Sequence record: LR745208.1
Strand: one strand, 5' to 3'
DNA: 64,000 bases
In this document: positions 1,600 through 61,848 of the stretch, piece after piece
How the letters are laid out: each line of letters begins with the position of its first letter
Numbering within the stretch: position 1 is the stretch's first letter
Notes under the pieces: model-generated
Database searches by the model: none
Seen by the model: only the letters and a program-made list of their open reading frames with translations
Told to the model about the DNA's origin: nothing
Translations under genes and position numbers: made by a program

Positions 1600-1646
1600 C
1601 GATTTCCCTAAAAATTACCCTTCTCGTGCCGATAGGGTATTGAAGG
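1600..1646 (+). promoter_or_regulatory. sigma28-type promoter cassette
   Basis: CGATTTCCCTAAA-N15-GCCGATAG; heads ORF 1660. Confidence 0.8.
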
Positions 1647-1659
1647 CAGGTAGCTCATC

Positions 1660-1944
1660 ATGGACACCGATCGCGACATGGAAGAAATCGAAGCAGGCAG
1701 CGAGATCGAGCCCCTCTACGAGGACGACTTCGACCTTGACAACATGAGGGGACACCAGGGGGAGCCCACGGACTCCGAGGACATGGATGATTCCGACGAC
1801 CATGACCCCGATGACGATGACGAGTCCTACGAGGACGACGATTTCAACGATTCCATGGACGGTGATCATGCGTCGGCCTTGGCCTCCGCGGGTTGGGGAA
1901 CTGACGAAGATTATGGCACCTTCAACGCCTTCGGGGAGGAGTAG
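1660..1944 (+). CDS. highly acidic small phage protein
   Basis: about 39/94 residues D/E; C-terminal SALASAGWGTDEDYG. Confidence 0.8.
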   Translation: MDTDRDMEEIEAGSEIEPLYEDDFDLDNMRGHQGEPTDSEDMDDSDDHDPDDDDESYEDDDFNDSMDGDHASALASAGWGTDEDYGTFNAFGEE

Positions 1945-1945
1945 G

Positions 1946-2203
1946 GTGGTGCTCTGGCCCCCCCAGCCCCAGGGCTACACCAAGCGCACCGTCAAGGACT
2001 ACCAGCCTGGGGATGCCATCGGATATGCTCGGGCCTTCCTGAAGAGCACGGGTATGGCCACGGATCCACGCTGGAGCCAGCGGGGGAAGGTCGTGGGACC
2101 CAAGGGGGCCTTCCTCGAAGTCCAGTGGGCGGACCCTGAGGGCACGTCTCTGGTCCATCCCAACAATATCGCCAAGGTAGGAACGGCCGCTTGGGCGGAT
2201 TGA
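1946..2203 (+). CDS. hypothetical protein (GTG start)
   Basis: 3' part of ORF 1787..2203, abuts previous stop. Confidence 0.6.
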   Translation: MVLWPPQPQGYTKRTVKDYQPGDAIGYARAFLKSTGMATDPRWSQRGKVVGPKGAFLEVQWADPEGTSLVHPNNIAKVGTAAWAD

Positions 2204-2248
2204 CGATTCTACTAAAAATCTTCCATCTCGTGCCGATAGGGTGTAAGG
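2204..2248 (+). promoter_or_regulatory. sigma28-type promoter cassette
   Basis: motif copy; heads ATG 2263. Confidence 0.8.
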
Positions 2249-2262
2249 AAGAAGAGAGCACA

Positions 2263-2466
2263 ATGAACCTCGTGACCCGCTCGGCCCGAAAGATGATCCG
2301 TCGATGTTGTGGGGATCACTCCCTCTCGGAGTTCAAGGCAAACGCCCACCGCGCAAATCGTGCGCGGGTCAAGCGAACCCTCGCCCAAGTCGCCTCGGGC
2401 AACATGGAGGATGCCAACCTCATGCCCGTTCGAGCGCACATGATCACCGCGTATGAGGTAGACTGA
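2263..2466 (+). CDS. small basic hypothetical protein
   Basis: ATG after promoter cassette. Confidence 0.7.
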   Translation: MNLVTRSARKMIRRCCGDHSLSEFKANAHRANRARVKRTLAQVASGNMEDANLMPVRAHMITAYEVD

Positions 2467-2574
2467 GCCATGAAAACCACCCTCACTGAATTCCTTCACG
2501 ATGTCATGGTCGGTGCCTTCTCCACCCTCGCTGTGCTGGTCCCGGTGCTTTGGCTATCCGGACAGGTATGACCG

Positions 2575-3361: not shown

Positions 3362-3410
3362 CGATTTCTTGAAAAAGTGGGCTATCCCGTGCCGATAGGG
3401 TTGTGAGAGA
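3362..3410 (+). promoter_or_regulatory. sigma28-type promoter cassette (TTGAAAAA variant)
   Basis: motif copy; heads ORF 3420. Confidence 0.75.
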
Positions 3411-3419: not shown

Positions 3420-3611
3420 ATGAAGACCCTGAAGACCATCGGACGTTCCGCCAGTGCTGTTTCTGCCCAGTTCCGTACCGGGGCAGGTTCGATGCATGAT
3501 CGGCGAGCCCCCAGGGGTGGTGCCTGCAACGATGTCAGGGAGCTCATGGACTCCTACATGGAGGACCGTGAGGTTCAGGGGGAACTTGATTCGATGGTTG
3601 ATGAGGGCTGA
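3420..3611 (+). CDS. hypothetical protein
   Basis: ATG after cassette. Confidence 0.7.
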   Translation: MKTLKTIGRSASAVSAQFRTGAGSMHDRRAPRGGACNDVRELMDSYMEDREVQGELDSMVDEG

Positions 3612-7628: not shown

Positions 7629-7703
7629 GCCCCATTGAGACATAGCGGCCTAATGCTCTGAGCTTTAACCTCAGGATCGCGAGTTCAAATCTCGCATGGG
7701 GCA
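7629..7703 (+). tRNA. tRNA with UUA anticodon (putative ochre suppressor, Glu-like body)
   Basis: acceptor GCCCCAT/ATGGGGC, anticodon arm CTGAG-CTTTAAC-CTCAG, T arm GCGAG-TTCAAAT-CTCGC. Confidence 0.8.
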
Positions 7704-7727
7704 CCCGCCAAAGGTGTAACTACAATC

Positions 7728-10113: not shown

Positions 10114-10320
10114 TTACGGACACACGATCTTGCTGTTGGCACGGACCCACTCACGGGCCTTGGTCTGGCTGGTGAACACAATGTGCTTGGGGGAACCATC
10201 CGGTAGGAACTCCCCAGGAATCACCACCTTGAAGGGGCGGCTGGGCTGGGCACTGAATTCGATGACTAGTGGGCTGCCCTGAACTTGCGTGATCCTGGTG
10301 TTGTATCGGTTGGTCGCCAT
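10114..10320 (-). CDS. small protein, paralog of 12998..13183
   Basis: MATNRYNTRITQVQG. Confidence 0.75.
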   Translation of the reverse strand: MATNRYNTRITQVQGSPLVIEFSAQPSRPFKVVIPGEFLPDGSPKHIVFTSQTKAREWVRANSKIVCP

Positions 10321-10332: not shown

Positions 10333-10377
10333 TCTCACAACCTTATCGGTATGGGGGGTCCCACAATTAGGAGAATC
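10333..10377 (-). promoter_or_regulatory. sigma28-type promoter cassette (variant)
   Basis: CTAAT-N15-ACCGATA. Confidence 0.7.
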
Positions 10378-10395
10378 AACTCAGCAAGAGGCCCA

Positions 10396-10632
10396 TCAAG
10401 ACAGGGCCACCATCACGGCTTCCCTGGCATCGTTGGACCCCCGGAAGGGGGCGCCGGGCTGGTCTCTACGACCCACAACCCGACCCGTCACAGTCATGGA
10501 GGTATCCCGGACCTCCACCCGGCCATCTGCCCGAAGGGAGACCCAGAAGTGCCGGTGACGCCCACGGGAAACGCTCACATGCACCGTCCCCGCAAGGTCC
10601 GTGCACGAATGATTTCGGGTCATTGTTTCCAT
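10396..10632 (-). CDS. hypothetical protein
   Basis: ATG after cassette. Confidence 0.65.
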   Translation of the reverse strand: METMTRNHSCTDLAGTVHVSVSRGRHRHFWVSLRADGRVEVRDTSMTVTGRVVGRRDQPGAPFRGSNDAREAVMVALS

Positions 10633-10638
10633 GGGCAT

Positions 10639-10684
10639 CCTCACAACCCTATCGGTACCAAGGGGTGACTTTTTAGTGAAATCG
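10639..10684 (-). promoter_or_regulatory. sigma28-type promoter cassette
   Basis: motif copy. Confidence 0.8.
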
Positions 10685-10849: not shown

Positions 10850-11053
10850 TCATGAGTTCACCAGGGCCAGCGCGGAATCCTTGGCAGCCTTCTCCGCACC
10901 CTGACCCGTGTACTCCTGGCGGACCGTGTTCGAGTCAGAGCTACCGTCCGGGAGCAGGTTCAGGTAGACCACGAAGTAGCCCGCACGAAGACGGAAGACT
11001 CGGTGGATCCGGGTTCCCTGAGGATTCGCTGGGACGGTCAGGATGGGTTTCAT
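10850..11053 (-). CDS. hypothetical protein
   Basis: ATG after cassette. Confidence 0.7.
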   Translation of the reverse strand: MKPILTVPANPQGTRIHRVFRLRAGYFVVYLNLLPDGSSDSNTVRQEYTGQGAEKAAKDSALALVNS

Positions 11054-11060
11054 GGTCTAG

Positions 11061-11107
11061 CCTCACAACTCTATCGGTATGGGGCAAGGCACTTTTTAGA
11101 GAAATCG
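11061..11107 (-). promoter_or_regulatory. sigma28-type promoter cassette (back-to-back with 11118)
   Basis: motif copy. Confidence 0.8.
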
Positions 11108-11117: not shown

Positions 11118-11163
11118 GGAATTTCCTAAAAGTCATCCCTCCCGTACCGATAGGGTTGTGAGG
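11118..11163 (+). promoter_or_regulatory. sigma28-type promoter cassette
   Basis: motif copy; heads 11164. Confidence 0.8.
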
Positions 11164-11301
11164 ATGCCCATGACCGTTGAAGAACTCGAAGCTATGGACC
11201 GTTCCTGGCCTTCCTGGATGCTAGGGGGGTTGGTCGGCCGGAGGTCCTGGCCCGGAGTCGGGCCCGAATGGCCGAGCTGGCTGAGCAGTTTCACCAGATG
11301 A
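11164..11301 (+). CDS. small hypothetical protein
   Basis: ATG after cassette. Confidence 0.55.
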   Translation: MPMTVEELEAMDRSWPSWMLGGLVGRRSWPGVGPEWPSWLSSFTR

Positions 11302-12762: not shown

Positions 12763-12953
12763 TCGTGGACATCCAGGACACCGCAAAGGCCCTCATAGGG
12801 GCTGGGGACCGCCTCCGGGCAGCCAAGGCCGCTTGGGTCACCCGGGGACCAGAATCGCCCTGGTACCGTCTCTGTGACGAACTGCGGGAGGCAGAGGTGC
12901 AATACCTACAGGCATTCGAGACCCTGAGGGCCGCCCTGGAACGATTTCACTAA
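12759..12953 (+). CDS. hypothetical protein; its TAA stop is the -35 of next promoter
   Basis: CGATTTCACTAA overlap. Confidence 0.65.
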   Translation: MIVDIQDTAKALIGAGDRLRAAKAAWVTRGPESPWYRLCDELREAEVQYLQAFETLRAALERFH

Positions 12954-12987
12954 AAAGTTGCCTTCTCGTGCCGATAGGGTATTGAGG
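12942..12987 (+). promoter_or_regulatory. sigma28-type promoter cassette
   Basis: motif copy. Confidence 0.8.
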
Positions 12988-12997: not shown

Positions 12998-13183
12998 ATG
13001 GCGACCAACCAATACAACACCCGGATCACTCAGGTACAGGGCTCGGCGATCGTGATTGAGTTTTCTGGCCAGCCCTCGCACCCCTTCAAGGTGGAGATTG
13101 CGGGACAGCGTTGGGTCTTCAAGTCCCAGACCAGGGCCCGAGAGTTCGTTCACAGCCGAATGCCAGTGGGTTCAAACGAGTAG
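12998..13183 (+). CDS. small protein, paralog of 10114..10320
   Basis: MATNQYNTRITQVQG. Confidence 0.75.
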   Translation: MATNQYNTRITQVQGSAIVIEFSGQPSHPFKVEIAGQRWVFKSQTRAREFVHSRMPVGSNE

Positions 13184-13193: not shown

Positions 13194-13239
13194 CGATTTC
13201 ACTAAAAAGTCACCCCCCCATACCGATAGGGTTGTGAGG
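13194..13239 (+). promoter_or_regulatory. sigma28-type promoter cassette
   Basis: motif copy. Confidence 0.8.
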
Positions 13240-13241: not shown

Positions 13242-13520
13242 ATGAACATGACCACCTACCGAGTCGCAGTAAGCCTTTTCGCAGTCCGGGTCCGTGTGGG
13301 CACGGAGCACATCCTGTATGTGGCCGAGAAGCCCCAGTGGGATGGCAGCTGGGCAACCAGCGATGTCACGCAGGCCAAGACCTGGACGACCAAAGGCTGG
13401 GCGCGCAAGTGGATCCAGGAGCGTGCATTCCGACAGATCGAGTCGGCCAGCGTCATCCCCCAGGACTGTCACAACCAGAACTATGCCTGGGTGGAAACTG
13501 TTTTGGGTCGTCAGTCCTGA
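13242..13520 (+). CDS. hypothetical protein
   Basis: ATG after cassette. Confidence 0.75.
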   Translation: MNMTTYRVAVSLFAVRVRVGTEHILYVAEKPQWDGSWATSDVTQAKTWTTKGWARKWIQERAFRQIESASVIPQDCHNQNYAWVETVLGRQS

Positions 13521-14006: not shown

Positions 14007-14052
14007 CGATTTCACTAAAAATTGGTCCCCTCATGCCGATAGGGTTGTGAGG
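14007..14052 (+). promoter_or_regulatory. sigma28-type promoter cassette
   Basis: motif copy. Confidence 0.8.
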
Positions 14053-14059: not shown

Positions 14060-14263
14060 ATGAACACCAACGACGCAACATTCTCGAACCGGGTCAACGT
14101 CAACGGTGCCGAAATCAACGAGGCAATCATTGCCCGGATCCGCACGGCGGTTGCCTACGAGTGTTCAACCGACGAGATCATGGACATGATCGAGGCAACT
14201 TCGACCTGCCCTACCCGTTGGGTAGCCTTCATGGCTGAGGCAATCCGCTCGGGCCGGGCATAG
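14060..14263 (+). CDS. hypothetical protein
   Basis: ATG after cassette. Confidence 0.75.
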   Translation: MNTNDATFSNRVNVNGAEINEAIIARIRTAVAYECSTDEIMDMIEATSTCPTRWVAFMAEAIRSGRA

Positions 14264-14268: not shown

Positions 14269-14315
14269 CGATTTCGCTAAAAAGTCCCCTTCCCGTACCG
14301 ATAGGTATTTGAAAG
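14269..14315 (+). promoter_or_regulatory. sigma28-type promoter cassette
   Basis: motif copy. Confidence 0.8.
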
Positions 14316-14325: not shown

Positions 14326-14565
14326 ATGGACGCCATCGTTTGGATCTCCAACCGCAACCATCCCACACAGACCACCTGCAAGGTCCTCCGAACAACCCCG
14401 ACCACGATCATCGTGGACATGGTCTATCCGCACACGACAACCAACCTCAAGTTCCGGCGCTCGGACGGCAACATGACCGGGGGCAAGGTGTCCTTCTGGC
14501 TGGACGCGGAGTCCCTGAAGCAGATCAACCGAGAGATCCTTGCCACCCACACAGGGAACTGCTAG
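14326..14565 (+). CDS. hypothetical protein
   Basis: ATG after cassette. Confidence 0.75.
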   Translation: MDAIVWISNRNHPTQTTCKVLRTTPTTIIVDMVYPHTTTNLKFRRSDGNMTGGKVSFWLDAESLKQINREILATHTGNC

Positions 14566-15288: not shown

Positions 15289-15334
15289 CGATTCCGCTAA
15301 AAATCTCCCCTCTCGTGCCGATAGGGTATTGAGG
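15289..15334 (+). promoter_or_regulatory. sigma28-type promoter cassette (identical to 15584 copy)
   Basis: 58 bp identity including ATGAACATGA. Confidence 0.8.
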
Positions 15335-15336: not shown

Positions 15337-15576
15337 ATGAACATGAAGAAGCCAGCCAAGAAAAGCTACTCCCCGCGGAAGAGCAACAAGTTCGAGTTCA
15401 CCTACGTGGAGTGGGATGAGGACACAGCGGCTCACTGTGTCTTCGGGAAAGACAGTGGGTTCGCCTACGCGGCCTTCTCGGATAAAGGTGAGGCAGACAC
15501 CTACAGTGAGGACCACAACCAGAACACGCGGGATGCCATCCAGCATGTTACAGAGACCAGCCTGTTCCCCCGGTAG
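15337..15576 (+). CDS. hypothetical protein
   Basis: ATG after cassette. Confidence 0.7.
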   Translation: MNMKKPAKKSYSPRKSNKFEFTYVEWDEDTAAHCVFGKDSGFAYAAFSDKGEADTYSEDHNQNTRDAIQHVTETSLFPR

Positions 15577-15583: not shown

Positions 15584-15629
15584 CGATTCCGCTAAAAATC
15601 TCCCCTCTCGTGCCGATAGGGTATTGAGG
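15584..15629 (+). promoter_or_regulatory. sigma28-type promoter cassette
   Basis: motif copy. Confidence 0.8.
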
Positions 15630-15631: not shown

Positions 15632-16189
15632 ATGAACATGACCACCCTACTCTACATCCACGGCCTGGAGTCTGGCCCTCGGGGGGCGAAGACTGAGGCC
15701 CTTGAGGCTGCGGGATTCACGGTGGTTTCCGAGCAGATGCCCTGCCCTCCCATCCGTGACCTGAAGGGACCAGAGGGCGCTCAACTTTTCGAGCAAAGCC
15801 TTATGATCCAGCTTCAGGCACTGGCAACCCATAAGATCGATGCCATCGTGGGGTCTTCTTTTGGAGGGGCAGTGGCCGTTGAGCTGTTGCTCCGTGGGCT
15901 CTGGGCTGGCCCCACCCTACTGCTATGCCCCGGTCACGAACTCATGGCGGAGCGAACCGGGTACCAGCTTCACTGGGAAGGGCTCGAAGGTCTCCCGGGC
16001 GAAGTCACCAAGCAGGTACTGGTGGTCCATGGTAGGGGTGATGCTGTGGTTCCCGTAGGGCACTCACAGAACCTAGTGGCAGGATCCCAGGCGACCCTGG
16101 TTCTTGTGGATGATGACCACCGCCTCTCGGCCACATCGAACACCCAGCAACTCACCAGCCTGCTTGCCCTCATCGGTGTGAGCCCCTAG
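15632..16189 (+). CDS. alpha/beta hydrolase (YqiA-like esterase)
   Basis: YIHGLES, GSSFGG, HG..D..VP, DDHRL. Confidence 0.85.
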   Translation: MNMTTLLYIHGLESGPRGAKTEALEAAGFTVVSEQMPCPPIRDLKGPEGAQLFEQSLMIQLQALATHKIDAIVGSSFGGAVAVELLLRGLWAGPTLLLCPGHELMAERTGYQLHWEGLEGLPGEVTKQVLVVHGRGDAVVPVGHSQNLVAGSQATLVLVDDDHRLSATSNTQQLTSLLALIGVSP

Positions 16190-16190: not shown

Positions 16191-16237
16191 TGATTTCGCT
16201 AAAAAGTCCCCCTCCCATACCGATAGGTATTTGAAAG
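16191..16237 (+). promoter_or_regulatory. sigma28-type promoter cassette
   Basis: motif copy. Confidence 0.8.
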
Positions 16238-16252: not shown

Positions 16253-16474
16253 ATGAAGCCCACATACATCATCGTTCTTACCCACACCACCACGAACGTC
16301 AAAACCTACGTGGCGGCCCGGACCCAGGTGGACGGTAGCTGGTCCACTCCTCACCAGGATCTCGCTCGTGTTTACAAGACCCTGGGTGGGGCGATGCGCT
16401 GGCTGGCCGACCACCCCGAGATCGCCCTTGGTACCGGTGGCATCCAGGGCGACATTGTCACGGTCCAGGTGTGA
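16253..16474 (+). CDS. hypothetical protein
   Basis: ATG after cassette. Confidence 0.7.
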   Translation: MKPTYIIVLTHTTTNVKTYVAARTQVDGSWSTPHQDLARVYKTLGGAMRWLADHPEIALGTGGIQGDIVTVQV

Positions 16475-16951: not shown

Positions 16952-16997
16952 CGATTTCGCTAAAAAGTCCCCTTCCCGTACCGATAGGGGATTGAGG
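16952..16997 (+). promoter_or_regulatory. sigma28-type promoter cassette
   Basis: motif copy. Confidence 0.8.
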
Positions 16998-17002: not shown

Positions 17003-17552
17003 ATGAGATGTCTCTGAAGCATCCGTCCAGAAGGCCGAACAGGAACAACAGCGGGTTGCAGCTCAGCGGGCCTACAGAGTTGAGGGACGGAAAACATTTG
17101 CCAAGAGGGCTGCCACGGTGGTTGGGGTTGTTCTGGTCGCGTTTCTTGGTGGCCTTGGGCTCATGCACGCGCAGGGCAACAGGGTAAGGGACGAACTCAC
17201 GACCCGCATGGAAGCCGTACGCCAACGTCGGGCGGACATCTACTCAGCCACCCAGAGAGAAGCCCACATAGTGGCCTACTGGGAGCAAGTGAGTGGCATG
17301 TCAGCCCCAAGGGAACGTGACGTTTGGGAAGCCCCCCTTTCACCACGGGATCGCGCTCTGGAACGAAGCCGGGCAGAACGCATCCGTGCCAGGGATGCCG
17401 AGATCACAGGTGCTGAAAACCGAGTTCACATTGCCATCCGCCGCTATGATGAGGCTGCGGCCAACTACAACCGTTACGCAGAATTAGTCGATCCATCCGT
17501 TTCTCGTGGGTTCCCCCACCATGTCCCCTACTCCAACGAGGTTTCCCCATGA
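17003..17552 (+). CDS. lemA: LemA-like membrane protein; extra base just after ATG 17003 (in-frame ORF from 17118)
   Basis: TM segment then QRRAD and ENRVHIAIRRYDEA..YN. Confidence 0.6.
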
Positions 17553-25322: not shown

Positions 25323-25368
25323 CGATTTTGCTAAAAATTGTGCTCCCCGTGCCGATAGGGTATTGAGA
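25323..25368 (+). promoter_or_regulatory. sigma28-type promoter cassette
   Basis: motif copy; heads 19-codon ORF 25373..25432. Confidence 0.8.
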
Positions 25369-25753: not shown

Positions 25754-25799
25754 CGATTTCGCTAAAAAGTCCCCTTCCCGTACCGATAGGGTTGTGAGG
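25754..25799 (+). promoter_or_regulatory. sigma28-type promoter cassette
   Basis: motif copy. Confidence 0.8.
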
Positions 25800-25807: not shown

Positions 25808-26122
25808 ATGAAAGACACTCTTCATTTCTATGGACAGGGTAATGTGGTGACGGATTGCCTTCGGCCTATCGGGGCAGATACTAAGAAGACCCAGGATGTT
25901 TTGCAGGTCACCTGCAAGGCATGTCAGAAGACACATACCTTCAAGGCATCCTTCCGGTTCCAATACGGGGTACGGATTGTGGTGGGAGACCGGGTCCGTG
26001 TTATCTCAACCCAAGAAGTGGGGGAGGTAATCGGATTCTGTCCCGAGGGGGTTCCCTACACGGTTCAGTTCAAGTCCGGGGAAACTGCCCGGCTCATGGG
26101 ACATGAAATCGAGGTCAAATGA
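25808..26122 (+). CDS. hypothetical protein with SH3/KOW-like C-terminus
   Basis: VGDRVRV..GEV. Confidence 0.7.
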   Translation: MKDTLHFYGQGNVVTDCLRPIGADTKKTQDVLQVTCKACQKTHTFKASFRFQYGVRIVVGDRVRVISTQEVGEVIGFCPEGVPYTVQFKSGETARLMGHEIEVK

Positions 26123-31988: not shown

Positions 31989-32204
31989 CTACGACAGGGC
32001 GTCCATGATGCCGGTCCGGATGGCCTGGATGGTTTCCTGTGACCACCGGTAGGAGCGGGCATCCGCCATGAGGTTGCCGACGATACCTTGGACATTGGCC
32101 CGGGTGACGGGGCCTACGGTGAACAGGAAATTCTCAACCGCCTTGCGGGACACGCCCGGCTGGCTGGCGAGGGATTCGATTCGTTCGTTGGTCAGGGTGG
32201 TCAT
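31989..32204 (-). CDS. phage hypothetical protein
   Basis: AVENFL..NL.ADARSYRW. Confidence 0.75.
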   Translation of the reverse strand: MTTLTNERIESLASQPGVSRKAVENFLFTVGPVTRANVQGIVGNLMADARSYRWSQETIQAIRTGIMDALS

Positions 32205-32212: not shown

Positions 32213-32259
32213 TCCTCAACTACCTATCGGTACGGGGATGGGACTTTTTAGCGAAATCG
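32213..32259 (-). promoter_or_regulatory. sigma28-type promoter cassette
   Basis: motif copy. Confidence 0.8.
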
Positions 32260-32268: not shown

Positions 32269-32586
32269 CTACTCATCATCCTCTTCCGAGTCATCGTCTT
32301 CCTCCGAGTCATCCTCGTCCGTGTAGGGGACATCGGGGAAGTAGAGGATCTGTCCCAAACCCATGCTGTCGGTCTGGGCACTACGCAGGCCCTCGGCCAG
32401 ATCCATCAGGTGACGGCTGTTGTCCTCCGCCCCCCAGACGAGGGCAGCCAGGAACTCTCCCAGGGTGTTGTCCATGCCCAGTTCGACCCCCAGGCAGGTC
32501 TTCCCGTACATGCCCCGTCCACTGTAGGACCGGCTGGTGAAGCCCTCAGAGTCATCGATGATCTGCTGTAGGATGTGCTTGGTCAT
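32269..32586 (-). CDS. phage hypothetical protein, acidic tail
   Basis: RSYSGRGMYG..C.G; DSMGLG.I.YFP. Confidence 0.8.
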   Translation of the reverse strand: MTKHILQQIIDDSEGFTSRSYSGRGMYGKTCLGVELGMDNTLGEFLAALVWGAEDNSRHLMDLAEGLRSAQTDSMGLGQILYFPDVPYTDEDDSEEDDDSEEDDE

Positions 32587-32595
32587 GACTGCTTC

Positions 32596-32640
32596 CTTCC
32601 TTCCCTATCGGCACGAGAGGGGTAGTTTTTAGCGAAATCG
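32596..32640 (-). promoter_or_regulatory. sigma28-type promoter cassette
   Basis: motif copy. Confidence 0.8.
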
Positions 32641-33077: not shown

Positions 33078-33123
33078 CGATTCCACTAAAAATCCCCATT
33101 CTCGTGCCGATAGGGTATTGAAG
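33078..33123 (+). promoter_or_regulatory. sigma28-type promoter cassette
   Basis: motif copy; heads 33133. Confidence 0.8.
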
Positions 33124-33132: not shown

Positions 33133-33339
33133 ATGGAGAAGAACACGAACCGAGATCACGTCACTGGCCAGTATGACGTGGATGATGATGCCATGTGCAC
33201 CTGTGGCCACAAGCGTGGTGAACACACCTGTGGCAAGCGCGGTACGGGGGCCTTTGAGTGCGTGGTCGAGGGGCCCGATGGCATCCTTGGAAGCGCCGGA
33301 TGCGAGTGCATGAAGTTCAATAGGGTCAGCTACCGATAG
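33133..33339 (+). CDS. small Cys/His-rich protein
   Basis: CTCGH..H..C..CEC. Confidence 0.7.
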   Translation: MEKNTNRDHVTGQYDVDDDAMCTCGHKRGEHTCGKRGTGAFECVVEGPDGILGSAGCECMKFNRVSYR

Positions 33340-33617
33340 GCTTCACCGCTACTGGCCAGTGACGTGATCTCGCAGGAGAGGCATGCTTCCAGGCCAGACC
33401 CAATGTTGTCCTGTCGGACGGCCTTCACAGCATCCAGGTGTTGGCCCGACTGCCGCAGCAACACTGCATACAGGACACTCGGGGGCTCTGGTTAGAACCC
33501 GAGGGTGACCCTCGCCTTGAGGGCCCGCATGCCCTGGCGGGCCAGTGACAACTCACTAAAGTACACCTTGCTGGTGCTGTGCATGGGAAAGTAGACCAAC
33601 TTTTTAGTGAATTCGAC

Positions 33618-34443: not shown

Positions 34444-34643
34444 GGCCCAGTCTCCTCCAAAAGTTCCAGCTCGTCCTCCGACCAGGGGGCATCATCCTCA
34501 AACTCGTCATCCCACCGGATGAAGAACTCCAGGTGGACATCATCCACAGCGATGATGGTTCCCCTGGCCGCTGTATCGTCCTCTCCAAGACACAGCCCGG
34601 GCTTGACTCGAACTCGATCATGAAGCCTCATTGGTTTCCTCAA
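34440..34643 (-). CDS. SH3-like small protein
   Basis: DRVRV..GTI. Confidence 0.6.
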   Translation of the reverse strand: MRKPMRLHDRVRVKPGLCLGEDDTAARGTIIAVDDVHLEFFIRWDDEFEDDAPWSEDELELLEETGP

Positions 34644-34888
34644 TACTTCCCCGAGACAATCCCGTTGGCCAGCTCGATGGCATCCCTACGAAAGAAGTAT
34701 GTGCCCACGATGCCCCCGTTCAGGTACACCGTGAACCGAAGCCGGGGCGTGGGGTTGAAAACGTTGCCATTCTTGGGGTAGAGGTGCCCAATGACCACAC
34801 GCTCAATCGTGTACCCCGCCGCCTTGGCCCCCGCCGAAAGCCCCACCACGCTGAATGACGTGTGCCCGAGTTCGTTGATGGGATTCAT
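34640..34888 (-). CDS. hypothetical protein
   Basis: ATG after cassette. Confidence 0.7.
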   Translation of the reverse strand: MNPINELGHTSFSVVGLSAGAKAAGYTIERVVIGHLYPKNGNVFNPTPRLRFTVYLNGGIVGTYFFRRDAIELANGIVSGKY

Positions 34889-34893: not shown

Positions 34894-34939
34894 CCTCAAT
34901 ACCCTATCGGCACGAGAAGGAGGATCTTTAGTGAAATCG
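34894..34939 (-). promoter_or_regulatory. sigma28-type promoter cassette
   Basis: motif copy. Confidence 0.8.
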
Positions 34940-35165: not shown

Positions 35166-35298
35166 CGATCTCAGGACATCCGAATAGAGCCTAGCAGGAC
35201 ATCCCACCCCGCGCTGGCCTGAGAAGCCTCTTCGGGTTTTTCTAGGATGCCCTGCCAGGACCTACTACCCATCCCGAGCCATATGGTGTCCATCCCTG

Positions 35299-35345
35299 CC
35301 TTCAAATACCTATCGGTATGGGAGGGGGACTTTTTAGGGAAATCG
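35299..35345 (-). promoter_or_regulatory. sigma28-type promoter cassette
   Basis: motif copy. Confidence 0.8.
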
Positions 35346-36068: not shown

Positions 36069-36273
36069 TTCCGTCTCTTTCCAAAGTCGCGGGTTGGTCC
36101 GACAGACCCTACCAGAACCTCAACCACACCCGTCCCCGCTGTAACCCGGTTCCAAATGTGTTTACAGGCCATGATGTCCAACAGGGCTTTAAAGGGCCCA
36201 ACCAGAGTACATGGTGTTGAGGTCCTGGTAGGACCAGTCAAGAAAAGTGCCCCAGGGGCCAAAGATTAGGAAC

Positions 36274-36408
36274 CAGTACAGTCCGGTGGGACTCGAACCC
36301 ACATCCACGGTTTACAAAGCCGCTGCTCTGCCTGCTGATCTACCTCAATGTAGGTTATCCTAGGTTCCTACACCCACTTCCACCAGCTGAGCTACTTGGA
36401 CTGTACTG
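36274..36408 (-). tRNA. tRNA-Thr(UGU)-like with 52 nt D-loop insertion
   Basis: TAGCTCAGCTGGT..AGAGC, arm GCGGC-TTTGTAA-ACCGT, T arm GTGGG-TTCGAGT-CCCAC. Confidence 0.65.
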
Positions 36409-36409
36409 A

Positions 36410-36612
36410 CTCGATGAAGAATCCCATGTGTGGCCAGGAATTGAACCCAGCTACGGTCAGTCCACACCGACCGTCCCCATCCAGGGGCTAGGGGGAATCG
36501 AACCCCTGCACATCCAACACACACATGAGACTCGGTCGCGGGCAGGGGAGCTGCACCCCTCTAGCTTCATCAGCACCCTTTCGGGCCCCAGAACTCCTGG
36601 GCGGTCCGCGTT
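36410..36612 (-). ncRNA. promoter-driven structured RNA with three T-loop-like hairpins
   Basis: GGTTCAATTCC, GGTTCGATTCC, AGGGG-TGCAGCT-CCCCT, GCCC-GAAA-GGGT. Confidence 0.6.
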
Positions 36613-36616: not shown

Positions 36617-36662
36617 TTACAAACTACTATCGGTACGGGAAGGTGACTTTTTAGGGAAATCG
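36617..36662 (-). promoter_or_regulatory. sigma28-type promoter driving the RNA cluster
   Basis: motif copy, no RBS/ATG downstream. Confidence 0.8.
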
Positions 36663-37331
36663 TCACCGACCCATCACAACAGCCCCACAGCCAACATTGG
36701 CCATACATAGGATGCCACGTACCCCTTTGCTGGAGTTGCAGGACTTGCAGGCGATCACGATGTTCTCAGCCACATTGGGGCCACCCTTCGAGATTGGGGC
36801 TACATGGTCCACCGTAGGTTTGTCCCCATAGGGCTTGAGGCAGTAGGCACACAACCCACAAGATACCTCCAGGGCCAGCTCAACCTCATCCCCTGTGAGG
36901 GTACTCTCCACCTTGGCTAGATTGGCCCGACGCTGCTGGCGGTTCACAGTGAAATGTTCTGGGTGGGATTTGTAGAACCGGGCATCCTTCGCCCGTCTCC
37001 TTTCAGGGTGCTCCTTGTTCCGGGCATTTTGACGGGCCCGCACTGCTGCCCTGTTAGCCTGATAATAAGCTGCACTCCGGACCCTATATTTTTCAGGGTC
37101 CCTGGCATCCTCCCATGCCTGAACTCGTTCTGGATTGGAGGCACGATAAGCAATAACCTGCTCCTTAACCTTCACCCCGTCCCTCACGTAGCGTGCATGC
37201 CTGAGAATGGACATACACTCTTTACACTTGTACTTGTGCCCATCTTTAGCCCGTTTGTTAAGGCCAAAATCGTCAAGGGGCTTCAGAGTCCCACATTCGG
37301 AACATACTTTTTTAGCTGCCAAGGCATCCAT
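36663..37331 (-). CDS. HNH homing-type endonuclease
   Basis: CSEC, CKEC; CAYC..TVDHV.P.SKGG.N..NIV.AC..CN..K. Confidence 0.9.
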   Translation of the reverse strand: MDALAAKKVCSECGTLKPLDDFGLNKRAKDGHKYKCKECMSILRHARYVRDGVKVKEQVIAYRASNPERVQAWEDARDPEKYRVRSAAYYQANRAAVRARQNARNKEHPERRRAKDARFYKSHPEHFTVNRQQRRANLAKVESTLTGDEVELALEVSCGLCAYCLKPYGDKPTVDHVAPISKGGPNVAENIVIACKSCNSSKGVRGILCMANVGCGAVVMGR

Positions 37332-37463
37332 GCCAATGTGTGCGCAATAGGGAGATTAGCTGCGGGCCCTAACCTGAGCCCCGCCAGGGACTTGAACCCT
37401 GACCCGAAATCAAATGCCCGGTACTGCTCCATCTCACCCTTCGAAAGTCGAATCTTCATGGTA

Positions 37464-37509
37464 TCCTCAATATCCTATCGGTACGTGGAGGCAACTTTTA
37501 GTGAAATCA
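37464..37509 (-). promoter_or_regulatory. sigma28-type promoter cassette
   Basis: motif copy, 14 nt spacer. Confidence 0.75.
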
Positions 37510-37524
37510 TATTCGGCCCCCAAT

Positions 37525-37953: not shown

Positions 37954-38313
37954 CTACCCGTACACGATCTCCCCAAACAGGGCACATTGGATGAACACGT
38001 CAGCCGTGACCATATCACAGTTGCTGATCAGGACATCCTTGAAATGGTCAGGGTACTCCCGGGCCATCACCTGAAGGCCCCTCACGATGGAAGCATGGTT
38101 CATCACACACTCCCGCCTGGGGTCCTCGTTCTCGTAGATGGTCACCCCCCAGTAGTGTGCCCGGTCGGGACAGCTTGTGGAGTCCACATGCCCCCAATAC
38201 CGGATTCCGCCAGACTCGATGGCACTGATCAGCAAGGACTCGATCTCCTCGTTCTCAACCTCGAACGTCACGGTTACGGATGTCTTGGGCTGCTCAACTT
38301 CACGCTTGGTCAT
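37954..38313 (-). CDS. phage hypothetical protein
   Basis: AIESGGIRYW..ADVFIQCALFGEIVYG. Confidence 0.8.
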   Translation of the reverse strand: MTKREVEQPKTSVTVTFEVENEEIESLLISAIESGGIRYWGHVDSTSCPDRAHYWGVTIYENEDPRRECVMNHASIVRGLQVMAREYPDHFKDVLISNCDMVTADVFIQCALFGEIVYG

Positions 38314-38372: not shown

Positions 38373-38417
38373 ACCTCACTACCTATCGGCACGGGAAGCC
38401 AACTTTTTAGCAAAATC
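38373..38417 (-). promoter_or_regulatory. sigma28-type promoter cassette
   Basis: motif copy. Confidence 0.8.
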
Positions 38418-38496
38418 CCACGGCGGCCCTATGTGGCCCTATACCTCGAAGCTCAGTTCCTTTCAGCATGGAGAAATCGGCTGTAGCCCTCACAAA

Positions 38497-39354: not shown

Positions 39355-39681
39355 CTATACCTCGAAGCTCAGCTCCTTGAACAGGTCCTTCGCAGCCTCA
39401 AGCCCCAGGGCCCGATCAACCACCTCCAGGCGTACCACCCTGCGAAGCCCCTCAACAGCCTCCCTGATCGATGAACAGAACTCGGATGCAAAGGTGGTGA
39501 GATCCCCATCAGGTCCCAAGTCAGCCATGGCACGGTACTCAGGACCAGCTGCCCGGGGATAGACACACACCCGAATTGGTAACCCCCCAAACACACCAAG
39601 CTCGTCCTTGGTCAAGATATGAGGACGATCCTGAGCCTCATCACTGTATTGGATATCTGTCAGCTTGTTCATCATCTTCAT
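39355..39681 (-). CDS. hypothetical protein
   Basis: ATG after cassette. Confidence 0.7.
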   Translation of the reverse strand: MKMMNKLTDIQYSDEAQDRPHILTKDELGVFGGLPIRVCVYPRAAGPEYRAMADLGPDGDLTTFASEFCSSIREAVEGLRRVVRLEVVDRALGLEAAKDLFKELSFEV

Positions 39682-39684: not shown

Positions 39685-39731
39685 ATCACTACCCCTATTG
39701 GTAACGGGAGACCCCACTTTTAGGAAAATCG
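39685..39731 (-). promoter_or_regulatory. sigma28-type promoter cassette (ACCAATA variant)
   Basis: motif copy. Confidence 0.7.
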
Positions 39732-40226: not shown

Positions 40227-40537
40227 CGTACAACCCTCAGAGCGGGCTTCCCTCGCATGGCTACCGGGAGGGGATTGATGACGGCATACCAGCCCGTACA
40301 GAGCTCAGCATACACACCACAAGCCTGGAGGGCTCCATCCATCTCTACCGCACGGTCACCCTCAGGGTCGAAGAAGGGGGCAAGGTTACCTCCTCCATGG
40401 ACCACCACGAGAAGAGCACTGGGATGGACTTGGTTCCACTCCCCCACAGAGGCATTCCATTCCTTGGGGGTGTAGAACTTACCGTCAGGAATATCCCCAA
40501 CGAGGTTCTGAACCACTTGTCGGAGCTTGAGGGTCAC
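40223..40537 (-). CDS. paralog of 13579..13938
   Basis: VVVHGGG..GVYAELCTGWY. Confidence 0.7.
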   Translation of the reverse strand: MTLKLRQVVQNLVGDIPDGKFYTPKEWNASVGEWNQVHPSALLVVVHGGGNLAPFFDPEGDRAVEMDGALQACGVYAELCTGWYAVINPLPVAMRGKPALRVVR

Positions 40538-40818
40538 AGCCAGCGACCCTTGGACGGGGAAAGGATCGTGTCGACCCCATTCAGGGTCGAGTAGGCAGAG
40601 ACCACTGCCCGGCCATCCAGGAACATGACCTTGGCAAGGGTCACCTCTCCCGCCAGGAAGGCCAGCCCCATCTTGGTCCTGATATCCTGGGTGACCAGGA
40701 AAAGCTTCCACTCAGGACCGTCCCAGTGCCCCTTGTACTGAGGGTACCGGGCATTCTGAAGCTCCGCATTCCTGCGAAGCCGGACAATCCGCTCAGCTGG
40801 ATCCTTGGGTGTGGTCAT
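40534..40818 (-). CDS. hypothetical protein
   Basis: ATG after cassette. Confidence 0.75.
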   Translation of the reverse strand: MTTPKDPAERIVRLRRNAELQNARYPQYKGHWDGPEWKLFLVTQDIRTKMGLAFLAGEVTLAKVMFLDGRAVVSAYSTLNGVDTILSPSKGRWL

Positions 40819-40823: not shown

Positions 40824-40868
40824 CCTCACTACCCTATCGGCACGAGAAGACAACTTTTTAGTGAAATC
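40824..40868 (-). promoter_or_regulatory. sigma28-type promoter cassette
   Basis: motif copy. Confidence 0.8.
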
Positions 40869-41072
40869 CTACGGTGGCCCTAGTACCGGCTCGATCAAGT
40901 TGACCATTTTCCCACAAGCTGCGGGGGAACACCCATCCGAACAGCCCCTGTCGGCAATCCTCCAAACCTCACGTAGAACCGCATAGGCGGCATCCCGCTC
41001 TCGAAGGATCCGTTCCATCTTCTCGTAGGCTAAAGAGGGGAGGAGTGCAAAATCATCATCATCCGTGAGCAT
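40869..41072 (-). CDS. hypothetical protein
   Basis: ORF. Confidence 0.55.
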   Translation of the reverse strand: MLTDDDDFALLPSLAYEKMERILRERDAAYAVLREVWRIADRGCSDGCSPAACGKMVNLIEPVLGPP

Positions 41073-58202: not shown

Positions 58203-58254
58203 GTTGTTTCTCTTACACCTTCAAGGGGTGGTACATGCTTCAATCCTCTCATTT

Positions 58255-58362
58255 TGGCAACTTGCCTGGGATTTGAACCCAGATCCCGGCAAGAGTTGGG
58301 GGTGGGGTCTAGAACACCTTCCAACTCTCACCATGTGCTAACCAGTCTTGCACCAACAAGTT
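58255..58362 (-). tRNA. 108 nt tRNA with 47 nt anticodon arm and encoded CCA
   Basis: AACTTGT/GCAAGTT-G-CCA, D stem GTGC/GCAC, T arm CTGGG-TTCAAAT-CCCAG. Confidence 0.75.
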
Positions 58363-58364: not shown

Positions 58365-59210
58365 GGCCCCTACCCGGTTCTGCCCCGGGCCTCCCACCAT
58401 TCTGGGTAATGCGACTACACACCGTTAGGCCGTACTGGGTGGCGTGGGACATAACCACTAACGCTAGCCACCATCACGATTGAGGCAGTTTGTGGACCCC
58501 GCCGGGGTATTCCCTGACACAGACCACACTCTGCCCAAACATTAACCCCGTGCAGCAATTTCCACGGGACGGGTCCAACTGCGCCTTTTGGGTGACCTTT
58601 CGCTAGCAGGTGTCTCATTGTCCACGGGAGGCCCCGCTTCATCCGTTTGAGACTCGACCCAGTCAGTGGAATGCCTCCCACGTCTACCCAGGCCACCGCT
58701 AACTCCATCCTGTGCTGCCCTCAGACTGCCCCAAGAATCTTCACTGGGACCTTGGACCAACTGTAACGACAACACAAGGCATCATTGCGGAAGTACGCGC
58801 ACTCTATTCCGCTTCCCTCTCTCCCTGCGCGCTATGCCAGGAACTAAACCCTGGCTACCTGGAGAGGAATAAGCTGTTGGTGGGTTGATCCAGGCCAATA
58901 CTGGGGCCCGGACATTTCACTTGGGGGGGCGCCCACCGGCATCCTCCTTGCGCTACATCTTTCAGCGACCGGGCGGTTGTCTCGCATACCTGCCCAGTTA
59001 TCGCTTCTGGTTCGCCATTGGAACTGCTTACCCTCCGACATCAATCTAACTTCATCGATCAATCCGACTCAATCCACACATGGGGTGCCCCGTAGGGCGT
59101 AAGTTGGGTGGGATCTAACTCGGCGGGGCTCTTGCGTTTTTCATCATTGTAGGGTTCCTCTGCGTACGTTTACTGGTGCCTTGTTGGCTGGGACTCTTCT
59201 CTGTTCCTTA
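58365..59210 (-). ncRNA. candidate large structured ncRNA (~850 nt)
   Basis: own promoter, no convincing ORF, multiple hairpins, tRNA immediately 3'. Confidence 0.65.
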
Positions 59211-59252
59211 CACACCCTATCGGCACAAGAAGACCAATTTTTAGCAAATTCG
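59205..59252 (-). promoter_or_regulatory. sigma28-type promoter driving the large ncRNA/tRNA
   Basis: CGAATTTGCTAAA-N15-GCCGATAG. Confidence 0.8.
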
Positions 59253-59259
59253 TATGACC

Positions 59260-59874
59260 CTACGTGACCACATCTTCGTCTGGCTCGGCCAGTATGTACT
59301 GGTCCTCTGGAAAGCAGACGTCCACCCGGTAGGCGGACTCCTCATCATCTGACTCGTCCTGATCCTTTTTGATCACCACCAGGACTTTTTCGGATGCCGG
59401 GCACGGAAGGGACCCCACGAACATGTGGCGGCCCCCCAGGACTCCAACCACCACGTCCCCGGCATTGAGGTCCTTGGCCAATACCTTGATGGCATCCGGC
59501 CCCACCCGCTTGATCCCCAGGGGCTCCGCGATGGCGTTCAGGGCACCTGCCCGTTCAGACGGGGGGTCCACCGGGGCGTCTACCCCAATGGCTTTGCGGA
59601 GCTTCCCAATTTGGGACTCCAAATCCCCAATGTCCTTCTGGATTGCCTGGACCAAAGTCCCATAGAGAAGGTTGAGGGCAGCCTCCCCAGTTTTGACAGG
59701 CTGTCCTGACGAGAGGGGGATGCCTCGGTGCCTGATGACAGGGGACCCAACATTTGCAAAAACACCCCCGTCAGCCTTGTTGTCGCTGATCTCAATTCGG
59801 GTATCATGCCCCAAGAATCGCATGAGAAGGAAACACTCGCCTGTTGTCCGTTGCCTATTCATTGTCTGCTCCAC
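59260..59874 (-). CDS. hypothetical protein with shared CF.LMR.LG domain
   Basis: paralogous module. Confidence 0.75.
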   Translation of the reverse strand: MEQTMNRQRTTGECFLLMRFLGHDTRIEISDNKADGGVFANVGSPVIRHRGIPLSSGQPVKTGEAALNLLYGTLVQAIQKDIGDLESQIGKLRKAIGVDAPVDPPSERAGALNAIAEPLGIKRVGPDAIKVLAKDLNAGDVVVGVLGGRHMFVGSLPCPASEKVLVVIKKDQDESDDEESAYRVDVCFPEDQYILAEPDEDVVT

Positions 59875-60892
59875 ACGTCGTTCGTCTCAGGTCCCCATGT
59901 GGAAGCGCCACAGGTTCGGGCTGTGAGGGGAAAAGTACTAAGCAAGTAGTGGGGCCAACGTCCACCACTTCGCCCTTTTCGGTGGTGCTCACCCAACCCC
60001 TGTCTGCACGAACTATGTCGCCCTTTTTGATTGACCCGCGGCCCCAGGGACCACGGGCCAACTCCTCTTCCTCCACATGGTCCAGGTGCTCGGTCATGTA
60101 GTATCCTGTATACGCGCTGGTACCGGTACCCCTACTACTGGAGAATCCCACGCAAACCTCGTGGGGTCCGCAAGGACCAATCACGGTTCCAGTCTCATCA
60201 ATGTGTTGGTACCGGCCCCGTGCCACTTTGACCCGGTCCCCAATCTTGAATCCAGTCAGGCTCCCTGGTTCCGGGGTCCTCTCACAGGCAGCCACACAGG
60301 CAGAGGCAGGATCAAGGTCACCAGCGATGTACCATCCTGCCTTGGCACCCCCATCGAAGCTCACCATAAATTCGAGTTCCTCATATGCGTTTGGGGTAGT
60401 GCTTGTCACGGTCCCCGTAAGACCTATGAACCGGTGCTCCAAGTTGGTACCCCTGGTCTTGCGGGCAAGGCGAACCCGGTCCCCCACTTTGTAGGCTGGG
60501 GTTCGGATAGAGCAGGTACACTCATCGCCAGCCCCAGCCGCACAACCAGGACAGGTACCCCCACCATGGGGTCCCGCAGCACCAGTTGGGGCTGTGATTG
60601 ATCTCAGCTTGGCGATTTGGGTCTCCAAGGTCTTGACCTTGGCATCCACCCGCTTGGTCAGGAGCCGGACCAGCTCCTCAAGTGAGGCTTCCGGGGTGGG
60701 ATGTTTCTTGGACGTCATGTCCCCGGCTGACACCCAATAGGTAGAGGTGCCATCGGCGAGTAGCATCTCCTTCTTGAGGATGCCTCCCGTGAATCCCATT
60801 CCCTCGATGAGGGCAAAACATGTTTTCTCAAGCGTTTTCATCACTTGCACTCGAATCTTTCTGGGAAAAGTGCTGCCACCTTTGCTGTCCAC
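59855..60892 (-). CDS. mosaic protein: shared domain plus three SH3/KOW-like repeats (start possibly 60841)
   Basis: KVGDRVR, KIGDRVK, KKGDIVR. Confidence 0.75.
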   Translation of the reverse strand: MDSKGGSTFPRKIRVQVMKTLEKTCFALIEGMGFTGGILKKEMLLADGTSTYWVSAGDMTSKKHPTPEASLEELVRLLTKRVDAKVKTLETQIAKLRSITAPTGAAGPHGGGTCPGCAAGAGDECTCSIRTPAYKVGDRVRLARKTRGTNLEHRFIGLTGTVTSTTPNAYEELEFMVSFDGGAKAGWYIAGDLDPASACVAACERTPEPGSLTGFKIGDRVKVARGRYQHIDETGTVIGPCGPHEVCVGFSSSRGTGTSAYTGYYMTEHLDHVEEEELARGPWGRGSIKKGDIVRADRGWVSTTEKGEVVDVGPTTCLVLFPSQPEPVALPHGDLRRTTCGADNE

Positions 60893-61131
60893 TCATGTCC
60901 ATGTACCTTTTGTGCCTTCCGCTCCCCGTCCTGGAGCTTCTCCAGCGCGCGCTTGAAGATCCTCCCCGCTCGTAGGGGTACGATTTTGAAGGGCTTAAAC
61001 CAGTAACTCCCCCACCCATGGGCCCTTACGTGCCCCTCGTCGCTCATTTCAGTGACCTCCCCTCCCAATACGTAGGGGTACACGTCATGTTTCCAGAAGG
61101 CGTATTGTTTCACTGACTTGGACCCTCTCAT
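60841..61131 (-). CDS. phage hypothetical protein
   Basis: YAFWKHDVYPYVLGG. Confidence 0.75.
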   Translation of the reverse strand: MRGSKSVKQYAFWKHDVYPYVLGGEVTEMSDEGHVRAHGWGSYWFKPFKIVPLRAGRIFKRALEKLQDGERKAQKVHGHEWTAKVAALFPERFECK

Positions 61132-61337
61132 GGTTCCTTCCCCTTCGGTGTCCCAGCGAGATCCTCAAGGGACTCCGCCAGCCCATCCAGGTCGTAAGAT
61201 TTCGCACAACAGGTTCCAAACTTGCCATCACAGCCCTTCGTGATCAACAGCCCCGACGCAGCATCGTAGCTCATGTCGAAGTTGGAGTGGGTCTTCCAGA
61301 AGGCCAGGAAGGCACGGATTGTTTCTTCTAGGGTCAC
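61128..61337 (-). CDS. hypothetical protein
   Basis: overlapping ORF. Confidence 0.6.
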   Translation of the reverse strand: MTLEETIRAFLAFWKTHSNFDMSYDAASGLLITKGCDGKFGTCCAKSYDLDGLAESLEDLAGTPKGKEP

Positions 61338-61762
61338 GGGCCACCAAACTTCTGAGGAACCCCGCCTCTATCGAAAGGCCAAGCCGGGCCATACTCGGAG
61401 TTGGGATTGGCTGCATCCCACGCTGCCGCACATGTCCGACAGGGACGCTCCCAGTAGCCATTTCGATCCAGGTGCCCGCATCCGAAGGTCAGGCCCTCGT
61501 GGATACCTGATGAGACGGCACAGTCGGCTTGGCCACATGGCCTGGGTGCGCAGTGCATGGGGGCCATAGCGTCATCGTCGCCCTCGCCGCGAATCGCGCT
61601 GCACTCACACTCGCCCGGTGTCGGGGCGCCACATCCATCACAGGCGCACTCGCACGGCACGCAGTCGCATCCGGTGCAGGGGGTGGCGAGCGCGGTGATG
61701 TTGTTGAGCCGGTAGGTGCGGCGGGTCTTGGGTGGGTCATTGTCAACGGTCGAGGCATCCAT
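61334..61762 (-). CDS. Cys-rich hypothetical protein
   Basis: GIHEGLTFGCG.LD.NGYW..PC. Confidence 0.7.
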   Translation of the reverse strand: MDASTVDNDPPKTRRTYRLNNITALATPCTGCDCVPCECACDGCGAPTPGECECSAIRGEGDDDAMAPMHCAPRPCGQADCAVSSGIHEGLTFGCGHLDRNGYWERPCRTCAAAWDAANPNSEYGPAWPFDRGGVPQKFGGP

Positions 61763-61802
61763 CGTGGTCTCCTGGGTGGGTGTTCCGGCCCGCAGGGCCA
61801 GT

Positions 61803-61848
61803 TCCTTACACCCTATCGGCATGGGGGCACCAATTTTTAGAGAAATCG
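61803..61848 (-). promoter_or_regulatory. sigma28-type promoter cassette
   Basis: motif copy. Confidence 0.8.

Follow-up and report, generated by a model that had tools for sequence, protein, structure and literature searches.

What enzyme reads a block of about 46 nucleotides (nt) that recurs in front of small genes of the phage record LR745208.1, and is the block a promoter at all? The record, an unannotated 'uncultured phage' of 485,034 bp, corresponds to GWB1_PHAGE_COMPLETE_CIR-CU-CL_55_23, given as a curated circular genome from Rifle groundwater in its source publication (Al-Shayeb et al. 2020, PMC7162821). The window, that is, the whole stretch of 64,000 bases analyzed here, comprises bases 1-64000 of the record and contains zero N. 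The original prediction, made on the window, described the block as a promoter cassette of the sigma-28 (FliA) type with an extra upstream element, CGATTTC. Our analysis indicates that the cassette very probably represents a class of promoters, and that a sigma-28-family holoenzyme built on the host core polymerase is its probable reader. The motif was judged on the full 485,034 bp rather than the 64-kb window, by a position-weight scan of both strands with a weight matrix derived from the copies themselves.

A uniform cassette upstream of small genes

Aligned copies share the block CGATTTC-n-CTAAAAA-gT-nn-CCyyCyCGT-R-CCGATA-GGGtnTtGAGG, many positions of which are invariant, and the information content is high over 46 columns and about zero directly outside on both sides. 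Because these edges are sharp and the flanks unrelated, the block itself is the conserved unit. In the window, CGATTTCNCTAAAAA is matched 23 times at one mismatch or fewer, against 0.01 expected, and CCGATAGGGT 27 times, against 3.9 expected. The two core boxes are nearly fixed in the aligned strong copies: TAAA has T in 50/50, then A in 49/50, 50/50, and 50/50, and the second box has R (G in 31, A in 19), C, C, G, A, and T in 50/50 each, and a last A in 49/50. TAAA and (G/A)CCGATA are separated by 15 nt in almost every copy and by 14 or 16 nt in a few, much as had been predicted; among the window copies found with a regular expression the distance is exactly 15 nt in 25/27, the other two being off by 1 nt. 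The CGATTTC box, originally described as invariant, is real and strongly kept, at 76-98% per position, but it does vary.

The scan of the whole genome returned 57 matches with bimodal scores, none of which lie between 15 and 24 bits. Strong copies number 55: 28 in the window, 19 between 64 and 160 kb, and 8 in the remaining 325 kb, three of which (464.6, 464.7, and 482.6 kb) border on the window once the circle is closed. Thus, 50/55 fall inside one arc of ~180 kb, running from ~464 kb through 0 to 160 kb, in which the genes are small (median 90-140 amino acids [aa]), lie on mixed strands, and are dominated by ORFans; the cassette-poor arc holds the replication and structural genes. One further, degenerate cassette at ~156790-156835 (-), back to back with the copy at 156830(+) and carrying CATTTTTCA instead of CGATTTC, lies below the scan threshold, so that the true copy number is slightly above 57. 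Within the window, 30 copies were scored between 1600 and 61848 (15 on each strand), plus one half-copy on the minus strand at 33601-33615, which agrees with the 31 copies (15 plus, 16 minus, one degenerate) counted originally.

Every copy lies between genes and is directed at the gene that follows, and the predicted orientation into a small open reading frame (ORF) or RNA unit holds genome-wide: for 46/55 strong copies, a gene called on the same strand starts within 120 nt, and downstream of most others lies an ATG that the gene caller missed. In the window, the start of an ATG-initiated ORF follows CCGATA by 12-28 nt in 25/30 copies, with GAGG, the Shine-Dalgarno site, in between, as the expectation of a close ribosome-binding site and ATG would have it. 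The ORF starts at 52-71 nt in 3/30 copies, and 2/30 lack one: 25323-25368, where a called gene begins 87 nt on, and 59207-59252, which leads into ORF-free RNA. Two cassettes precede RNA rather than an ORF, namely a tRNA-like cluster at 36.6-36.25 kb and the ~1 kb without an ORF at 59.2-58.2 kb; since cassettes also precede RNA genes, the element acts on transcription rather than translation. The proteins encoded downstream are nearly all ORFans (no Pfam family in 9/10 tested), and no flagellar, chemotaxis, or motility gene was found among the targets, which are phage ORFans or RNAs. Two pairs of cassettes stand back to back and divergent (11061/11118 and 464630/464685).

Two other identities for the block were considered and set aside. 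Long-range covariation is absent, the top mutual-information pairs over 50 copies all being neighbouring positions, and the cassette is therefore not a hairpin or a repeated structured RNA element; no Rfam family matched it. Nor does a terminator precede each cassette: no terminator-like folding was found when upstream 60-mers were compared with random windows (p=0.23), and intrinsic terminators are not above chance.

Correspondence to the sigma-28 code

The published FliA consensus is TAAAGTTT-N11-GCCGATAA, that is, TAAA, 15 nt, and GCCGATAA (PMC7286023). The phage core is TAAA, 15 nt, and (G/A)CCGATAG, with boxes and spacing as in that consensus, and the regular expression written for it also matches the sigma-28-dependent fliC and fliD promoters of Escherichia coli K-12 at the same spacing. 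As TAAA-15 nt-(G/A)CCGATA equals the FliA consensus, the comparison made in the original prediction is correct at the sequence level. The cassettes share with class III flagellar promoters of the sigma-28 (FliA/SigD/WhiG) type the TAAA -35 box, the (G/A)CCGATA -10 box, the 15-nt gap, and the co-oriented position upstream of genes. They differ in being phage-borne, in their number (~55), in standing before ORFans, tRNA-like RNAs, and other non-flagellar genes, in adding CGATTTC, a pyrimidine spacer, GGGt.T, and a fused Shine-Dalgarno site, in the G as the final -10 base, and in being conserved far tighter than bacterial FliA regulons.

A sigma-70 identity was rejected: the cassette lacks both hexamers of TTGACA-N16-18-TATAAT, and sigma-70-like sites stay at chance level, with 33 genome-wide against 33-54 in shuffles and 0 against 2.5 expected in 10-18 kb. 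A domain scan of the 27 largest ORFs, which divergent folds could escape, returned no RNA polymerase domain, and the phage carries a NusG-like gene; these two observations make the host core polymerase the likely enzyme. Searches with phmmer and hidden Markov models (HMMs) built on E. coli FliA, RpoD, RpoE, and RpoH detected no sigma region 2 in 3877 ORFs, and the phage-encoded sigma-28 homologue offered in the original prediction as one possible reader is thus not detectable; the only related proteins, gpA and gpB (see below), have region-4-like domains and no region 2. The word 'sigma' is absent from the annotation in the examined part of the published GenBank file, and a bulk Pfam scan of 140 proteins gave the best 25 families only, from which sigma region 2 is not excludable. 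Taken together, the sigma-28 core match, the lack of sigma-70 enrichment, and the missing RNA polymerase domain make host RNA polymerase with a sigma-28-family factor the best reading. Whether that factor is the host's own FliA, the extra conservation then reflecting strength or one added contact, we regard as an even call.

Each copy would thus unite a strong promoter of the sigma-28 type with a Shine-Dalgarno site in one compact expression cassette, composed of a -35 (CTAAAAA), a 15-nt pyrimidine-rich spacer, a -10 ((G/A)CCGATA), a GGG discriminator, and GAGG. Host core polymerase with a sigma-28-family factor, most likely host FliA, would initiate transcription ~7-8 nt after CCGATA; the resulting leaders would be very short, with their 5' ends at the Shine-Dalgarno site or slightly ahead of it, near GAGG. 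Each cassette would serve a single small accessory gene or a few in succession, or RNA in two cases. For the extra conservation, which covers CGATTTC (~-42 to -36), the spacer, and GGGt.T, one possible explanation is selection for the greatest promoter strength, as with the early promoters of T4; another is one added protein contact, for which the phage protein gpA is the candidate. We infer an 'early' timing of the cassette genes, as well as the role of CGATTTC and the identity of the sigma.

Several known systems resemble this arrangement in part. T4-type early promoters, about 40 in number, are very strong, have an extended consensus, stand before small early genes, and are read by host sigma-70. 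The phage cassettes are like them in comprising many near-identical extended promoters before small ORFs of host-takeover type in a plastic region and, as proposed, in using host polymerase; they are unlike them in that the boxes are of the sigma-28 type, not TTGACA/TATAAT. Regulons of phage-encoded sigma factors (SPO1 gp28/gp34, phiEco32 gp36, and T4 gp55/gp33) likewise have a uniform phage-specific promoter class, and sigma-derived domains are present in gpA and gpB; however, no phage region 2 was found, and the cassette copies a host-type alternative-sigma consensus instead of setting a new one. T4 MotA/AsiA middle promoters offer a parallel for a possible extra upstream box bound by a phage DNA-binding protein with the host sigma on the -10, but here the box adjoins an intact -35 and does not replace it, and no homologue of MotA or AsiA was identified in the phage.

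The gene-taxonomy profile in Al-Shayeb et al. (2020, PMC7162821) assigns 75% of genes to unknown, 10.4% to Spirochaetes (the top phylum), and 4.2% to Proteobacteria. A search for the 22-base extended motif among 185,579 bacterial species representatives (GTDB) gave a single match, in Spirochaetes bacterium RIFOXYC1_FULL_54_7. The contig concerned (1986 bp) is 100% identical to phage bases 312244-314229, which identifies it as a co-binned fragment of this phage, and a bacterial occurrence of the motif was accordingly rejected. As no bacterial representative carries it, the extra boxes belong to the phage and are not shared by host flagellar promoters. In Spirochaetes, FliA and FlgM are present and a sigma-28 promoter with a -10 of CCGATAA has been mapped (PMC9481697). 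The host is probably a spirochaete: both the profile and the mis-binned piece point to Spirochaetes, and the Bdellovibrio host suggested originally finds no support.

The motif seems confined to this phage. Exact-pattern scans of IMG/VR returned this phage plus single chance matches, and sigma-28 core sites number 0 against 1.1 expected in 78 related loci (1.53 Mb); the motif was not found in the loci of four relatives, and a search for a homologue of the early region through a TPM-domain protein returned only an unrelated contig of 44% GC content. A set of ~55 sigma-28-type phage promoters with an added upstream box and a fused Shine-Dalgarno site was not found in the searchable literature, in keeping with the earlier statement that no described phage is known to have so large a sigma-28 regulon. 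Sigma-28 promoters are known, as are uniform sets of phage promoters; their combination with CGATTTC and a fused Shine-Dalgarno site is new as far as the searchable literature and other viral contigs extend. Phages are known to run their takeover programmes through the primary sigma of the host, through a sigma of their own, or through their own polymerase, and a large regulon in the flagellar sigma-28 code would add a fourth route. Were host FliA to read the cassettes, the accessory genes would be expressed according to whether the host is in its motile state, in which FliA is active. The cassette is also a uniform promoter-plus-ribosome-binding-site part, whose 55 natural variants lend themselves to dissecting sigma-28 promoter strength, and it provides a concrete entry point to the transcription biology of uncultivated huge phages.

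Several points weigh against a sigma-28 holoenzyme as the reader, a proposal that derives from sequence. The eighth -10 base is G in 47/50 copies where the consensus has A, leaving 7/8 positions of GCCGATAA matched, and FliA promoters need far less than the ~46 nt conserved in the block. It would be unusual for a phage to depend on an alternative sigma for genes that appear to be expressed first. The host assignment is weak, with a ratio of 2.46 in the authors' profile, and the 185,579 representatives include no genuine bacterial carrier of the 22-base extended motif. Finally, gpA, a region-4 paralogue unique to this phage, could supply the specificity instead.

Region-4-like proteins and other possible readers

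The paralogues gpA (153904-154692 (+), 263 aa) and gpB (419691-420284 (-), 197 aa) score 36.2 and 39.7 bits against Pfam Sigma70_r4, above the cut-off of 24.1, match PHROG sigma families, and have two helix-turn-helix repeats each and no region 2. In sequence searches of the PDB, they best match region 4 of SigF and of Aquifex FliA. The predicted model of gpB (predicted local distance difference test score, pLDDT, 85) shows tandem region-4-like domains and matches only sigma region-4 structures, including SigF, FliA, and WhiG; gpA consists of an N-terminal mini-domain followed by a region homologous to the two region-4-like helix-turn-helix domains of gpB. With 887 homologues at 50-74% identity on contigs of up to 619 kb, gpB belongs to the core gene set of a large clade of huge phages, always placed after a clamp-loader gene and the NusG-like gene; such tandem region-4 proteins are themselves uncharacterised. 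The 0 sigma-28 core sites in the relatives' loci make gpB an unlikely reader of the motif. Its divergent paralogue gpA (41-45% identity) has no close homologue among 5.8 billion proteins. PHROGs returned no families for the neighbours of either gene. An array of five tRNAs for Arg/Gly ends ~20 nt before the gpA start codon; ARAGORN places 34 tRNA genes in arrays at 141800-201000 (+).

That the specificity is encoded by the phage, with gpA recognizing the upstream half CGATTTC-n-CTAAAAA, is the most serious alternative, though we consider it rather unlikely. Here, gpA could work on the RNA polymerase flap unaided, as a 'minimal sigma', could team up with a region-2-like partner that has escaped recognition, or could take the place of region 4 in a host sigma (appropriation), and the likeness to sigma-28 promoters would stem from descent of the gpA domain from group-3 sigma factors. 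The Pfam scores, the PHROG families, the PDB matches, and the gpB model are in its favour; a protein with two tandem helix-turn-helix domains would fit a pair of adjoining upstream boxes; and minimal sigma factors have been described for (group 2) jumbo phages (PMC7824862). That gpA and the motif are both confined to this phage, while gpB is core to the clade, is a suggestive parallel, drawn from a single genome, and the PDB matches are weak (E 0.002-0.07). Lacking region 2, gpA cannot by itself explain a sigma-28-type -10 box, and with no region 2 in gpA, gpB, or any other ORF, both -10 recognition and DNA melting would go unexplained. Moreover, gpA lies inside the cassette-rich arc behind the tRNA array, without a recognisable promoter of another class in front, and a system specified entirely by the phage would have no need to reproduce both sigma-28 boxes and their spacing exactly. 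More doubtful still is the full version, in which gpA, without region 2, redirects host RNA polymerase to an extended sigma-28-like promoter, reading CGATTTC and CTAAAAA either as a minimal sigma of a new kind or as a host-FliA appropriator, and so creating a private 55-promoter regulon that copies and extends the flagellar promoter code of the host.

It is very improbable that the cassettes are promoters for an RNA polymerase that the phage encodes or carries in its virion, whether single-subunit or multisubunit of the phiKZ kind, and that their likeness to sigma-28 sites is coincidental. Highly uniform promoters are typical of phage polymerases, and the genome has many very large ORFs without a recognisable domain (among them 3644, 1833, 1764, 1260, 1190, 1180, and 1146 aa). 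The domain scan of the 27 largest ORFs speaks against it, as do the lack of covariation and hence of an N4-type hairpin at the cassettes, and the bipartite -35/-10 layout with sigma-28 spacing, which is a holoenzyme signature; the NusG-like and sigma region-4-like genes fit a host core enzyme. That some copies were duplicated along with their genes is clear from the identical cassettes at 15289 and 15584 and the paralogous ORFs 10117-10320 and 12998-13180, and a copy at 426261 precedes a gene missing from relatives, but a non-promoter repeat (a mobile or recombination cassette, repressor operator, or translational leader spread with duplicated small genes) is hardly credible given conservation that ends exactly at the block edges, mostly unrelated downstream ORFs, strict co-orientation with a fixed start-codon distance, copies before RNA genes, no inverted or direct terminal repeats, no structure signal, and a box-for-box match to a known promoter consensus.

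Copies in the window and neighbouring features

The first copy, at 1600-1645 (+; 71.9 bits), has an ATG 26 nt after CCGATA, opening a 94-aa ORF (1660-1941). Its left neighbour is a TnpB/Cas12f-like ORF at 93-1535 (+; OrfB_IS605 and TNB domains, 480 aa), which ends 60 nt before the cassette; if it has a guide RNA whose guide begins at the right end of the element, that guide would overlap the cassette sequence. The next two plus-strand copies are 2204-2249 (57.1 bits; 67-aa ORF 2263-2463) and the weaker 3363-3408 (25.4 bits, its -35 half shifted by 1 nt; 63-aa ORF 3420-3608). On the minus strand, a weaker copy with CTAATTG and CCGATAA at 10333-10378 (34.7 bits) precedes the 68-aa ORF 10117-10320, the paralogue mentioned above, and 10639-10684 (60.1 bits) precedes the 80-aa ORF 10399-10638. 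The divergent pair consists of 11061-11106 (-), which scores 12.5 bits in fixed register owing to a spacer longer by 1 nt (67-aa ORF 10853-11053), and 11118-11163 (+; 54.2 bits; 45-aa ORF 11164-11298).

A run of plus-strand copies follows. The best-scoring of all is 12942-12987 (73.2 bits; 61-aa ORF 12998-13180), succeeded by 13194-13239 (67.9 bits; 92-aa ORF 13242-13517), 14007-14052 (68.2 bits; 67-aa ORF 14060-14260), and 14269-14314 (63.7 bits; 79-aa ORF 14326-14562). The two identical cassettes are 15289-15334 (67.4 bits), before a 79-aa ORF (15337-15573), and 15584-15629 (68.4 bits), before a UPF0227-like ORF of 185 aa (15632-16186). Beyond them lie 16191-16236 (61.8 bits; 73-aa ORF 16253-16471), 16952-16997 (71.3 bits; 59-aa ORF 17008-17184), the copy without an adjacent ORF at 25323-25368 (66.0 bits), and 25754-25799 (70.0 bits; 104-aa ORF 25808-26119).

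From there on, all copies but one are on the minus strand, the exception being 33078-33123 (+; 63.5 bits; 68-aa ORF 33133-33336). Three precede it, at 31645-31690 (64.8 bits; 69-aa ORF 31433-31639), 32214-32259 (63.0 bits; 71-aa ORF 31992-32204), and 32595-32640 (59.5 bits; 105-aa ORF 32272-32586), and the degenerate half-copy at 33570-33615 keeps CGAATTC-A-CTAAAAAGT at 33601-33615 and has lost the CCGATA half. Next are 34894-34939 (64.2 bits; 82-aa ORF 34643-34888) and 35300-35345 (64.8 bits; 40-aa ORF 35174-35293). The copy at 36617-36662 (53.7 bits), which lacks GAGG, leads into the tRNA-like cluster (36560-36250), within which a 37-aa ORF called at +58 also sits. Three tRNA-like T-arms (GGTTCGATTCC, GGTTCAATTCC, and GGTTCGAGTCC) lie behind this copy at 36250-36610 (-); Rfam scores one tRNA there (36285-36343) and ARAGORN calls zero, and the elements may be unusual or interrupted tRNAs. 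A copy with a spacer shorter by 1 nt at 37465-37510 (34.1 bits) precedes a 58-aa ORF (37286-37459), and 38373-38418 (51.4 bits) is followed by a 71-nt leader and a 119-aa ORF (37957-38313). A degenerate copy with a shifted CCAATA at 39686-39731 (15.0 bits; 108-aa ORF 39358-39681) and 40824-40869 (66.3 bits; 94-aa ORF 40537-40818) come next. The copy at 59207-59252 (61.9 bits) faces ~1 kb without an ORF, from 59200 to 58230. This stretch matches nothing in Rfam, folds unremarkably (z-score -1.8), and ends in a tRNA-like T-arm followed by GCCA (~58250-58290); it may encode a long non-coding or tRNA-like RNA driven from a promoter of its own. The last copy, 61803-61848 (53.2 bits), has a leader in which a GGCCC-TGC-GGGCC hairpin is followed by AGGAG and the ATG of a 142-aa ORF (61337-61762).

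Two other motifs recur upstream of genes. Genome-wide, GG(C/T)GTAA(G/C) occurs 3-10 nt before the ATG of many genes without a cassette, for example, at 5825, 7713, 29529, and 50116(-) in the window, and also in related phages (359 and 1439 in L036, 6826 and 7218 in L038); it could be a clade-wide initiation signal of a non-Shine-Dalgarno kind or a -10 for near-leaderless mRNAs. Just upstream of genes in the arc of replication and structural functions lies GGTATGGT, a candidate late-promoter or initiation motif (256443, 300607, 306721, 314462, 327661, 347178, 362339, 389572, 431316, and 481790).

A putative suppressor tRNA at 7629-7705 (+), with a borderline Rfam score of 29.5 and the anticodon TTA, would read UAA, and a gene for the release factor RF-1 lies at ~63465-64058 (-); their presence in one genome may point to interference with how stop codons are read. 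DNA polymerase A and the UvrD-like, DnaB-like, SNF2, and RecD2-like helicases contain inteins or homing-endonuclease inserts. The clamp loader looks interrupted too, being ~170 aa longer than in relatives, and with it included these genes lie at 284693-289981, 300620-305863, 293818-296670, 297557-300556, 442541-445330, and 420816-422702.

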